DNA of 63,543 nt, counting the filler, from Olpidium bornovanus S191 (Eukaryota > Fungi > Olpidiomycota): assembly GCA_017911155.1 (NCBI GenBank). It is 30 parts of 30 records of this genome, joined end to end, with 100 filler letters (N's around TTAATTAATTAA, not from the genome) between each part and the next. Parts side by side here need not be neighbours in the genome. Positions count along the whole stretch, not along the records: positions 1 to 2,630 come from JAEFCI010009447.1; 29 more parts are not named here. The stretch is one strand, 5' to 3'. Made by a program: the position numbers and the translations under genes. Positions 1-4,074 of this stretch are shown here, piece by piece; position 1 is the first letter of the stretch, and each line of letters starts with the position of its first letter. Below the pieces are notes generated by a model. That model was not told the DNA's origin, searched no databases, and saw only the letters and a list, made by a program, of their open reading frames with translations.

Positions 1-515
1 CATGACCGCAGCATTCCGGTTTCGGTTGCTCGTCGCCGTCGTAATCAGCGTGGTCGTCTACGGAGCAGTTCTCGCCGCCTTCGACGTGACCGCAGCATTC
101 CGGTTTCGGTGGCTCGTCGCCGTCGTAGTCAGCGTGGTCGTCTACGGAGCACTTCTCGCCGCCTTCGACGTGACCGCAGCATTCCGGTTTCGGTTGCTCG
201 TCGCCGTCGTAGTCAGCGTTGTCGTCTACGGAGCACTTCTCGCCGCCTTCGACGTGGCCGCAGCATTCCGGTTTCGGTGGCTCGTCCCCGTCGTAGTCAG
301 CGTGCTTCTCGCCGCCGTCGGCGTGGCCGCCGCATTCCGGTTTTGCCAGCTCGCCGCCGTCGTAGTCAGCATGATGGAGGGCCTCGTCTTCAGAGCACTT
401 CTCGCCGCCTTCGGCGTGACCGCAGCGTTCCGGGTTCTCCGGCTCGTCGCCGTCGTAGACAGCGTGGTGGAGACCCTCGTCCACGGAGCACTTCTCGCCG
501 CCTTCGGCGTGATGG
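1..515 (-). repeat. Coding tandem repeat, 84-bp unit, about 6 copies (GGEKCSVDDHADYDGDEPPKPECCGHVE)
   Basis: Units start at 3, 87, 171 and 255 (period 84), then at 324 and 417 (69- and 93-bp variants). All length variants are multiples of 3, and the repeat is in frame with exon 3 of the natterin-like gene. Confidence 0.95.
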
Positions 516-2429
516 TCCTCGGCTTCCCACCATTCCGATTTCAAGTGCGACGCGAGGTCCAGCCTGAGACCATGGAGCAAATACGGCGACTCGCACTGGT
601 TTGTGCTAGGATTGCACTGTAGGTCTCCGCAGCAGTCTTTGTCGTACTTGCACTTGGCGCCGACGCACTGGCGTAAGTAAGTGTGGACGTGCTCGGCATG
701 AAGCAACTCGAGAGGCGGCTCGACGGGCGGGAAGAGGACGCCGGATTGGCACGTTCCCTGAACGCATTCGAGGTCTCCGCAGCAGTCCTTGCTCTGCTTG
801 CACTTCGCGCCTACGCAACCACCTTCCCAGTCGTGGTAATCCTTGTGCCAAGAGTGAACAAGGCCGATGGGGAAACAATCCGTGTCTACCGACCGGCGGA
901 TAACGTCAAAGCCGCGCAGAGTTCCGCCGATTTTCATAGAGAACGAAGTGCCGTCGTCCATGAAAAAGGTCTCGGTACCGGTCCACCGCACGACGAAGGC
1001 ATTCGCGACACGTTCTGTGACGTGAACGGTGCATTCGCTGCGCGGAGGTATTTCAAAGCTAGAGTGTGGGTGTTTCGCGTGGAGGGGAAGGAAGGGAAAC
1101 GGTCAGATAACATATTGGTACGGTCAATGGACGGCAATTATGTCCCAGCGCTGTTTCGGCTTCGTCCACTACAGTTACGGACATGTACATGCGCGCCCCG
1201 AGAGCCCAACGACCGTCAACGCGGCCGTGGCCACGTGTCGCGTGAAAAGGAAATCAAGCAGCACCGTCGCCGAACAAAAAAGCCCCGCTTACTTCAACGT
1301 CTCGTCGGGGGCCTTCAGCTCAAATTCACGCGTATCTTTGAACAACGAAAATTCCACGTCGAACGGCGCAGCGGCCTCTGCAGCGGGGTCGTCACCCCTG
1401 CTTACTTGGACGACTGTTTCCGCCCAATAGCCCAAATTGCTGTCCGCCTTGTACGTGTAGGCCCGGGTATTGAGAGAACGGGTCGCGAACTTGGGCTCGT
1501 TTTCGATGTTGATGTTGTTAAGGACGGGAGTGTGGTCGGTGACAGTGAGCTGCTCGGGGGTGAAGGAATCCCGGTCGATCACGAGGGAGACGAAGTTCGC
1601 CCTGGGCGCGAAGTGGAAGGCCAGCGCGTCGAGACCTCCGGCGTCGTTTCCGGAAATGCCGCAGATGAAGCCGCTGTGGACGTCGAGGATGCGGACGTCG
1701 TGGTTATGGTGCGCCGACGACGACCCTTCGGGCTCGTCGCCTTCGCTGGACCGCAAACGGAACGCGAACTTCCCGCCCGACGACGTCGCGAACGTGACGA
1801 CCCTCCCGCCGTCGGTGTGCTGGAGAACCGTGAGCCTCTCGTTGGGCTTGAAAGCGTGCGCGTTGTAACACCCTACGGGTTCCCCCGCGGCGAACTGCTC
1901 GCCGTCGTGGTACGTCAGGCGTACGCCGTTCAGGCCGTCGTGTCCCCAGACCTCGAGCTTCATAAGGGTGATGCCGTTTCGGCAGCCGTAGTGGGCGAAC
2001 GCGCCCAGGATCCCGTCACCGACCCTTTCGACGGCAACCTGCAGGCCGGCTGTGCTCCGGAGCAGGGGCCCGGCGAAGTGCTCATCCCCGTCGCGGTGGT
2101 TTCCCTTCCTGGCGTGCTTCCACTCGTCGTCGCGGACTTCGGGACCCGGCAAGCAAGTGGCGCCGTGGTGGACGTCCGGCTTGAGGTAACCATCTTTTTC
2201 CAGGGGGGGAGATTAAGGAAGAGAGAGGGAGGGACGCCCCGCGTGGACCGCGCGGAGTCAGAGAGACCAACTGCATAAGGAACGGCCCACCGGCAGGTTC
2301 CGCCCCGCACGTGTCCGTACCGTACGGAGTGGTGCCGCCGTGGCCGAACAGGCCGCCTCCCGGGCTAGGCGCGGCCGCGGCGCTGGCGAGAGCGGCCGCC
2401 CCGCAGAGAAGAAAAGCCGAACGCAGCAT
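1..2429 (-). CDS. Secreted natterin-like protein: jacalin-like lectin + aerolysin/ETX-MTX2-type module + 2 knottin-like modules + His/Cys/Asp tandem repeats (3' truncated)
   Basis: Exons are 2429-2291, 2193-1293 and 1058-<1. The introns are GTGGGC..AAAAG (phase 1) and GTAAGC..CTCTAG (phase 2), and the frames join without stops. Signal peptide: MLRSAFLLCGAAALASAAAA. Jacalin-like segments: AFAHYGCRNGITLMKLEVW and DVHSGFICGISGNDAGGLDALAFHF. Aerolysin-type C-terminal strands: ETLNFEIPPRSECTVHVTERVANAFVVRWTGTETFFMDDGTSFSMKIGGTLRGFDV. These resemble zebrafish Dln1/Aep1 as recalled from memory. Exon 3 is open to the contig edge. Confidence 0.8.
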
Positions 2430-2563
2430 ACGGTGGCGGCGGCGGCAAAGGCGGAGAGGAGGGCCAATGGGGACGGCGCACGGCCGGCGGAGAAACGCGG
2501 CATCGGCTCTTTTTAATATCTCGCTCGGACTGTGGGCGCCGGCGGCGGGCAGTGGCTAGAGAC

Positions 2564-2630
2564 GGGGGGGGGGGGGGGGGGGGAGGGGGGGGGGGGGGGG
2601 GGGGGGGGGGGCCGGGGGGGGGGGGGGGAG
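2564..2630. repeat. Poly-G tract at contig end (one example of many poly-G/C/A/T tracts at contig ends)
   Basis: Long G run. Similar runs occur at about 7125-7150, 13411-13498, 17948-18002, 21681-21730, 23315-23385 and 58486-58536. Run lengths are probably unreliable. Confidence 0.9.
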
Positions 2631-2730
2631 NNNNNNNNNNNNNNNNNNNNNNNNNNNNNNNNNNNNNNNNNNNNTTAATTAATTAANNNNNNNNNNNNNN
2701 NNNNNNNNNNNNNNNNNNNNNNNNNNNNNN
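2631..2730. other. Artificial contig-joining spacer N44-TTAATTAATTAA-N44 (first of 29)
   Basis: Identical 100-nt spacers with stops in all six frames start at 2631, 5594, 7190, 9214, 12119, 13311, 15455, 17840, 21581, 23210, 27123, 28594, 30468, 33320, 34852, 36463, 37619, 40704, 44780, 46847, 48333, 49939, 52539, 54110, 55538, 58376, 59486, 60901 and 62282. Confidence 0.99.
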
Positions 2731-2749
2731 CATGATATTACACGGTTGA

Positions 2750-3150
2750 GGACAAACAGATATAAATACGCGGTGCTCGCGTGAGAAGGTTGAGCAATTT
2801 TTGCGAAGGACGCCCTCTCCAGAGCAAACACTCGGTATCCATCAGCCGGTCCCTATTAGAGAACATTATTTGTTGATACAAGCCCCGTATTTGATTTTGC
2901 ACTGATAAAAGATAACTGCAAGCGAACGAGGTACAAGAATTCTATGTGTTGTTCAGCGTACGGATTCAGCATATTATTGCCTTTAATCTTGAAGCAAACG
3001 GCAAAGTCGAGCGGGACATCACACATTGATGGGCGCCCTCGTCAAAATGGCCAGATTTGAGTCTGCAGTGTGGGACGACCTATTGGTCTTCGCGGACTAA
3101 GGGCGGGCCGATTGGCGACGCACAAAACCACGGTGTTTGGGGTTCGTGGT
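2750..3150 (+). mobile_element. Decayed Ty3/gypsy integrase fragment
   Basis: Broken frames give YKYAVLA, EKVEQFFAKD, RIQHIIAFNLEANGKVERD (rve-type NGxVER motif) and VWDDLL, with stops and frameshifts. Confidence 0.55.
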
Positions 3151-4074
3151 CCTCGGTGCACAAAGCAACAGATACAGTCATCAATAATCTAACGCTGAGG
3201 ACCGCACGCTGGCATTGAGTGATATGACTAGCGCAGCAAGCAATCACCAATGTTCGGAACTGCGCGCAGCCTTAAAGTAGTTTAAGACCGGTAACGTTGA
3301 ACGAGGGCGTTGCAGCAAGTCTAATATCCGCAGTTCTGCCTTGCCTTGACGCGGAGATATTGATTTATTTTCATTCTAGACACAAAAAAATACTGAGATC
3401 TTATAGTTTTCTGGCCGGAAGTCGTCTAATTCCGTAAATATAATAGCAAAATTAGATGGATTCCATTAAGGAATCGAATGTATGGAAATTACTGCTTCCA
3501 GCGCTCTTGCTTTTGCCACCGCCGGGCGGAACGTTGCTGAAAGGTACACTCCGGAAAGACGAATACCAGATAACACACCAAAGGTCGACTCGAAAACAAT
3601 CCCACTTTTAGAACTACAGTAGAGGTGACCGCGGCGCTGTCTCCGAAAGCGCGGAGCTCGGCGAGGTGTACAGTGGAGCGAATACGTGATTTTTATGATT
3701 TGGGGTGGGGGGGAACATCGGTGATTGGGGATCAGGGACAAAAAGAATGGCACAAAAACATGATACACAGATCACCACGGGGAATCCTGTTGCTATCTCT
3801 GAGAGAGCGAAGCTCCCCGAGGTGCAGCAGTTTACTTCTTTCTTTTGTTAAGTGCCGTTGCGGGGGAATAATTGCACGGGAGGGGTGATGCGCGGGAAAG
3901 ATCATTTCCCCAAGTGCCATTCTCAAAGATGCGTTCACCCCAAACGCCACGGCGGAATTCCTAACTACCCTCCCCCCTCCGCAGATGCCCCGCGACTCCT
4001 GCCTCAGGAACACGACGAAAAGCGGTGTCCGCGACCGTTCCTTCCCCCCGTGACCCGCCGTCGGCCGGAAGAGC

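Follow-up and report, generated by a model that had tools for sequence, protein, structure and literature searches.

A transcribed and spliced gene of Olpidium bornovanus encodes a probable jacalin-aerolysin protein with six-cysteine modules and an acidic repeat tail

The stretch of DNA analyzed here (the window) comprises 63,543 nucleotides (nt), filler included, of the Olpidium bornovanus S191 assembly GCA_017911155.1, and its bases 1 to 2630 are the entire contig JAEFCI010009447.1 (C9447); the parent assembly has 28.2 Mb in 13,525 contigs. A genuine gene of three exons, expressed and spliced, lies on the minus strand of this contig, with its start ATG at 2429. The gene product is a very divergent relative of the natterin-like lectin and pore-forming proteins of fish and lampreys, and its architecture, a jacalin-like domain followed by an aerolysin-type module and C-terminal additions, was assigned with high confidence. 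The favored reading, which we regard as moderately probable, is a secreted lectin-aerolysin pore former with regulatory or targeting additions at its C terminus, and its mode of action would most likely be that of a glycan-targeted beta-pore-forming protein. The two-domain design of lectin and aerolysin module is known, while the six-cysteine modules and the acidic repeat tail are new here.

The gene model was established with Logan contigs of runs X2 and X5, which come from different studies. Each run contained one record of about 1.9 kb that was collinear with the window except for two joints, one omitting positions 1059 to 1292 (234 nt) and the other positions 2194 to 2320 (127 nt). Both omitted stretches are bounded by CT..AC on the plus strand, hence by GT..AG on the minus strand, and the depth was zero within them. 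The two runs are marked as probable RNA in the run records; the contigs were taken as transcripts because both introns are gone at canonical sites on the coding strand. Their identity to the genome was above 99.7%. Two raw RNA-seq runs carrying the species label of the gene-holding runs gave zero reads on the window, which is no test of expression.

Exon 1 (2321 to 2429; this and all features below are on the minus strand) contains the start codon, the predicted signal peptide (approximately residues 1 to 20, bases 2429 to 2370) and a Gly-rich stretch. It is preceded by a 5' untranslated region that covers at least 2430 to 2489, as the contigs extended to 2489 (X2) and 2471 (X5) and no ATG occurs from 2489 down to 2429, the first ATG in them. 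Intron 1 (2194 to 2320; 127 nt, GT..AG, phase 1) is followed by exon 2 (1293 to 2193), which encodes the jacalin-like domain, preceded by the conserved N-terminal extension and followed by the initial two thirds of the aerolysin-type module. Intron 2 (1059 to 1292; 234 nt, GTAAGC..AG) is in phase 2. The codons within the window sum to 689 (36 + 1 + 299 + 1 + 352), and the frame is still open at base 1. The spliced contigs of the two runs bear out a minus-strand gene with two introns, as the original prediction, made from the sequence alone, had proposed, and its intron 2 (1292 to 1059) was exact. For intron 1 it had placed the donor at 2290 (97 nt), whereas both RNA-derived contigs put the true donor at 2320. 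Since this donor lies 30 nt upstream in the same phase, the frame is kept, but ten residues, GTDTCGAEPA, become intronic, and the proposed minimum of 699 codons is corrected to 689. Introns also interrupt the paralogue on contig C9124 at the two corresponding codons, in matching phases; they are 235 and 147 nt long there and dissimilar in sequence, and the DNA of C9447 and C9124 is no longer similar beyond a few bases from the exon edges. A (CA)n microsatellite was observed within intron 1 of the paralogue, at 930 to 960 of C9124. A plus-strand open reading frame of 531 amino acids (683 to 2278) was rejected as a gene because the coding region to which it is antisense is rich in G+C and the transcript, judged by its splice signals, comes from the minus strand.

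The protein was handled exon by exon, and the public protein of the C9124 paralogue represented the lectin-aerolysin region as a whole. At the N terminus a single Arg precedes a hydrophobic Ala/Leu core of about 15 residues (mean hydropathy of about 2), after which comes a small-residue motif, A-x-PSP; this pattern is also kept in the paralogues on C9124 and C3711. Secretion through an N-terminal signal peptide is predicted from this reading of the sequence. The conserved stretch that comes next, ahead of the jacalin-like domain, contains about 10% His.

The jacalin-like beta-prism I domain was mapped through the alignment to 1604 to 2059, close to the position of about 2020 to 1610 that had been predicted for it. 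In a phmmer search of the PDB, exon 2 matched zebrafish Dln1 (4zno; E = 7.6e-8) with an alignment that spans the lectin and continues into the aerolysin module. Among 1.84 billion representative proteins, exon 2 had six matches at E <= 0.001: the paralogue, three proteins with a jacalin domain (two of them with ETX_MTX2 as well) and two repeat-rich proteins with other domains. Each of the last two aligned in six separate short stretches and was taken as spurious. Curated profiles of the Jacalin/ETX_MTX2 type are present in the distant homologues P0004 and P0006. Residues 18 to 165 of the AlphaFold model of the paralogue superposed on jacalin-type lectins over about 130 residues with Z scores of 11 to 14 and root mean square deviations of 2.6 to 3.0. 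A first, shallow model built from 13 sequences also matched beta-prism lectins.

The aerolysin-type module is divided by intron 2. Its first part (1293 to 1603), identified by sequence, profile and model comparisons, holds a putative amphipathic pre-stem hairpin (LGYWAETVVQVS ... PFDVEFSLFK). Its last part (866 to 1058; FEIPP ... GTLRGFDV ... DCFP) is collinear with the final strands of the proteins from fish, lampreys and bacteria and was modeled confidently. The product ETL-N-FEIPP, which had been predicted for the second splice, aligns with NETLT..VEVPP of the zebrafish aerolysin-like protein. At the sequence level this module is the weakest link of the assignment. When the module alone was compared profile to profile by hhalign, P was 5.7e-4 against 7 sequences and 1.3e-4 against 114, in collinear alignments of 90 to 96 columns at equivalent positions. 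The real score of 33.6 exceeded that of all 150 column shuffles (maximum of 22.2) and of the reversed control (14.1). The nearest neighbors of paralogue residues 228 to 420 in the ESM Atlas, whose model is independent of the alignment built for AlphaFold, were mostly natterin, aerolysin and ETX_MTX2 clusters; with embedding values of 0.81 to 0.86 and template modeling (TM) scores of 0.46 to 0.60 for the Atlas's own low-confidence model, these neighbors are rated by the tool as leads only. At the hairpin position (..VEVSAGIPE.. in the fish protein), two strands of alternating hydrophobic and polar residues with an Asp/Pro/Ala-rich tip were read by eye in the C9447 protein.

AlphaFold was applied to residues 60 to 420 of the C9124 paralogue, which is 55 to 68% identical, because the C9447 protein is split by an intron and its exons were kept apart. 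With 126 sequences the model reached a predicted local distance difference test (pLDDT) value of 70, with 80 to 94 in the module core and low confidence for the loop that forms the hairpin tip; natterin-like proteins dominate this alignment, and the confidence is therefore partly borrowed from them. The top Foldseek matches of the model, over about 327 columns, were Dln1 (E = 1.4e-18, TM score of 0.63) and lamprey LIP (E = 1.5e-16 to 2e-17, TM score of 0.65 to 0.67), followed by SaroL-1, LSL, parasporin-2, the aerolysin prepore and Cry23. VIA superposition covered 288 to 293 residues in both domains, with Z scores of 17.6 for Dln1 and 16.5 for LIP. Taken with the domain order and the size, the aerolysin-type fold is well supported. 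The combined beta-prism and aerolysin fold, which the original prediction had proposed to check by structure prediction and Foldseek, was thus found in the paralogue model across both domains, and with the sequence match to Dln1 it supports the jacalin-aerolysin interpretation at the level of architecture; the function is proposed by analogy. Two Cys at exon 3 residues 9 and 61 (approximately bases 1033 to 1031 and 877 to 875; ..SEC.. and ..DCF..) are invariant in three paralogous exon 3 sequences and absent from the aligned fish proteins. They may form an extra disulfide.

Downstream of the aerolysin-type module, two six-cysteine modules follow, at 749 to 817 (C-x4-C-x5-CC-x4-C-x4-C) and at 593 to 667 (C-x4-C-x5-CC-x4-C-x6-C). 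All twelve Cys are conserved in the C9124 paralogue. The sole Pfam matches of the modules were to inhibitor cystine knot toxin families (Toxin_22, Toxin_12 and conotoxin), with E values of 0.012 to 0.07 that are below the cut-offs. Toxin_12 matched module 2 (E = 0.012), whose best PDB match was a spider theraphotoxin (E = 0.14). No usable neighbors were returned by an ESM Atlas search with the six-cysteine region. In knottins the disulfides connect I-IV, II-V and III-VI. The knottin modules of the original prediction were retained in part: the spacing C-x4-C-x5-CC-x4-C-x4/6-C occurs twice, as described, but no match to a knottin family was significant.

The acidic Cys/His repeat tail (1 to 562) has a period of 84 nt, with copies that are 95% identical, and runs off the contig. 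Its units of 31, 31, 23, 28, 28 and 28 amino acids share the core KPECCGH.EGGEKCSVDDHADYDGDE, and its composition is 30% Asp plus Glu, 14% Gly, 9% His and 8% Cys. The prediction of about six repeats of 28 amino acids holds for the number of units and the period, but their lengths vary from 23 to 31 amino acids. The order of domains, from the signal peptide to the repeat tail, was as had been described. Contig C11409 ends in 121 bases that are identical to those at positions 1 to 121 of the window, and the minus strand of C11409 continues in the same frame with 5 to 6 more units of 28 amino acids, a short transition, 3 to 4 units of 12 amino acids, a basic C terminus and a stop. A simple join of C9447 and C11409 would give a protein of about 938 residues; the true number of tail units is beyond the resolution of short reads. 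The tail repeat was found in the two genomic contigs and in RNA-derived fragments. No relatives of the tail were detected by the Pfam or ESM Atlas searches, and no relatives of exon 3 were detected in the metagenome scan.

The tail of the C9124 paralogue has at least 16 units of 18 to 19 amino acids and shares with the C9447 tail only a common core, KP-x-CC ... DYD-(G/A)-(D/E), indicating that the repeats evolve fast around a small conserved motif. The public protein of this paralogue (P0001, 799 amino acids) was compared with C9124 at 2530 to 3361. The deposited model exits the frame after a poly-Glu stretch and its tail reads as ...PSPRSRRVADP... repeats, whereas the frame that continues from exon 3 has no stop over 478 codons, up to the end of the contig, and encodes units of 18 to 19 amino acids, KPSCCGSK..DYDAEPA. 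The deposited annotation of this tail is probably misframed.

The genome contains at least four paralogous loci with a G+C content of 63 to 67%. The locus on C9124 has the full architecture and is 55% identical to C9447 over exon 2 and 66% over exon 3. C3941 carries an exon 2-like sequence with 39% identity. On the minus strand of C3711, a similar signal peptide (MRFLSVLAVAAALASAAAVQPSP) and a jacalin-like domain (50% identical) lie in different frames, indicating an intron placed as intron 1. On the plus strand of C5232, positions 36 to 290 encode a paralogous last exon (47% identical over 70 amino acids) with a stop about 25 residues past the aerolysin-type module, and six-cysteine modules and repeat tail are both missing. 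The C-terminal additions are thus optional within the family. The fragments on C3941 and C5232 possibly belong to the same gene. Among the 1.84 billion representative proteins, only the paralogue of the same genome shares the architecture of the C9447 gene, which agrees with the original prediction, whose author knew of no description of such an architecture.

Lectin-aerolysin pore formers are known in fish, lampreys, mushrooms, choanoflagellates and bacteria, with roles in immunity, defense and attack. The protein most similar in design is zebrafish Dln1/Aep1 (4zno, 4znq), in which an N-terminal jacalin-like beta-prism is followed by an aerolysin-type module of similar size in the same order, and the motifs ETL..PP, (Y/W)TGT and G.Y/L.G are common to the last strands. 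However, the identity is only about 18%. Dln1 has the mannose loop GSDID (GxxxD), which is not kept in the Olpidium protein, whereas the latter adds an N-terminal extension, the two six-cysteine modules and a repeat tail of about 400 to 450 residues. Lamprey LIP/LPFP (5zu4) has the same two-domain fold of jacalin-like and aerolysin-like parts, but it is only about 15% identical, has no C-terminal additions and is an immune effector of a vertebrate rather than a protein of a fungal parasite. Compared with Dln1 and LIP, the Olpidium protein has about 550 extra C-terminal residues with two new types of module. The aligned fish and lamprey proteins, Dln1 among them, lack a signal peptide and extend only a few residues beyond the aerolysin module, in agreement with the original prediction.

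A glycan-binding domain fused to an aerolysin-type module also occurs in LSL of Laetiporus sulphureus (1w3a), SaroL-1 of Salpingoeca rosetta (7qe4) and bacterial jacalin-ETX/MTX2 proteins, the last of which are homologous to the fish proteins. In LSL and SaroL-1, however, the lectin is a beta-trefoil and not a beta-prism, and none of these proteins has six-cysteine modules or an acidic repeat tail. The six-cysteine modules share the C-C-CC-C-C framework, with loops within the knottin range, with knottins such as spider Toxin_12/huwentoxin and the I-superfamily of cone snails, but they are internal to a large protein and not free peptides, and the match is not significant. Proaerolysin and epsilon-toxin have a C-terminal propeptide after the aerolysin-type module. 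As in those toxins, the extension of the Olpidium protein starts directly past the module and could control oligomerization, whereas their propeptides are short and unrelated in sequence. Natterin-like proteins in fungi have been reported by a survey (PMC8402412). In the literature collection that was searched, no paper names aerolysin together with Olpidium.

By analogy with Dln1, LIP and aerolysin, the protein would be secreted, its beta-prism domain would dock it on a surface glycan, and the aerolysin module would oligomerize, with the amphipathic hairpin forming a beta-barrel pore in the target membrane. A plant host cell, a competitor or a grazer would be candidate targets. More speculatively, the C-terminal additions could be a targeting, metal-binding or propeptide-like regulatory appendage, the nearest analogy being the C-terminal peptide of proaerolysin. 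Pore formation itself is plausible, and we put it slightly on the likely side. It is improbable that the six-cysteine modules and the acidic tail are a new control or targeting appendage of a pore former with which the zoospores of an obligate root endoparasite attack, permeabilizing host cell membranes or killing competitors; if true, zoosporic fungi would have their first described family of pore-forming effectors, and the tail-less paralogue would offer a natural comparison.

Several results weigh against a glycan-targeted pore former. Secretion, glycan binding, oligomerization and lysis are all predicted steps, and the protein groups with the natterin-like proteins at the level of the fold but not by curated profiles or by the sugar-binding motif. 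Pfam searches of the three exon products detected no jacalin, aerolysin or ETX_MTX2 model even at E = 10, and in the paralogue none of Jacalin (PF01419), Aerolysin (PF01117) and ETX_MTX2 (PF03318) was detected at E <= 0.01. The GxxxD loop is the defining motif of mannose-specific jacalin-related lectins. It is not kept in the alignment, where GSDID of the fish protein corresponds to AGGLD in the C9447 protein and GGLA in the paralogue; neither sequence keeps the Gly-to-Asp spacing, and the Asp itself is missing from the latter. The module alone gave only chance matches in sequence searches of the PDB, both as a single sequence and as a paralogue profile. With a hidden Markov model of 114 natterin-like modules, the module of the paralogue scored 5.2 bits and ranked 2 of 2001 together with shuffles, which is suggestive and not significant. 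In the first AlphaFold model (13 sequences, pLDDT of 49) only the lectin domain was folded, and the module was unfolded; the borrowed part of the confidence in the second model counts here as well. For the six-cysteine modules, "knottin-like" is a fair description of the cysteine framework, and the fold itself is putative. Finally, some aerolysin-fold proteins have no known toxicity.

The same architecture could also belong to a protein that is not a toxin, namely a lectin or adhesin that the zoospore, cyst or sporangium would secrete or carry in its wall; in such a protein the aerolysin-like fold would be a scaffold and the acidic Cys/His tail would bind metal ions or cross-link into the wall or matrix. 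The diverged sugar-binding loop and a module too divergent for any Pfam toxin model are consistent with such a role, as is the presence of a nontoxic crystal protein of the same fold in the Foldseek list. The long, fast-evolving Cys-rich repeats, with units of 28 amino acids in one paralogue and 18 to 19 in the other, also resemble surface or matrix proteins. However, a putative hairpin of alternating hydrophobic and polar residues with a flexible tip lies at the aligned position, as in pore-forming members, one paralogue is entirely without the tail, and the literature describes Dln1 and LIP, the nearest matches by structure, as pore formers. We therefore consider an adhesin possible and rather unlikely, and the secreted lectin-aerolysin pore former remains the favored reading.

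The source of the gene also has to be considered. The O. bornovanus genome was assembled from non-axenic zoospores of cucumber root washes and then binned by composition, the bin being selected by tetranucleotide composition and matches to fungal proteins (PMC7865070). The gene could accordingly be as described here and come from another eukaryote on the cucumber roots, the more so as the family has no fungal relatives to anchor it and most of the gene-holding runs are labeled differently from the 2012 run. In contrast, at least four paralogous loci with the same G+C content are present in one bin, and NCBI assigns the paralogue to this species ([quoted passage not shown]). The near-identical transcript in runs of at least two studies, with ten more runs holding the gene by word share, fits a common root parasite carried in host samples. 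Another source is thus quite improbable, and "zoosporic fungus", the host named in the original prediction, is the best label, which agrees with the NCBI record although it rests on a metagenome bin. An artefact of assembly or annotation, or a functionless pseudogene, can hardly be credited: the contig is short and ends inside repeats that short reads do not resolve, but the frame is intact over 689 codons, the paralogues are conserved, and the canonically spliced RNA-derived contigs, nearly identical to the genome, largely refute it.

As an obligate parasite of roots, Olpidium also transmits plant viruses, and hardly any of its molecular weapons are known. The results provide a transcript-supported gene model for an expressed candidate that is predicted to be secreted, in a small family of which one natural variant lacks the C-terminal additions. 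No relatives of the C-terminal modules were detected among the 1.84 billion representative proteins. If it is true that they regulate or aim the pore-forming module, they would represent a new solution for keeping a toxin inactive until its target is reached.

Upstream of the gene, at 2564 to 2628, the contig terminates in a single-base run of about 65 G (C on the gene strand), and the paralogues on C3711 and C5232 are likewise flanked by long poly-Pro-coding or poly-C tracts. These tracts may be a feature of the genome or a cause of assembly breaks. Eleven runs (X2 to X12) from four studies, all under one organism label (B), each contain at least half of the words of the window, and two of these, X2 and X5, show the spliced form; the sole 2012 run with the gene (X1) bears a different organism label (A). 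If label B is a host plant, the gene would be expressed during root infection in several independent experiments.

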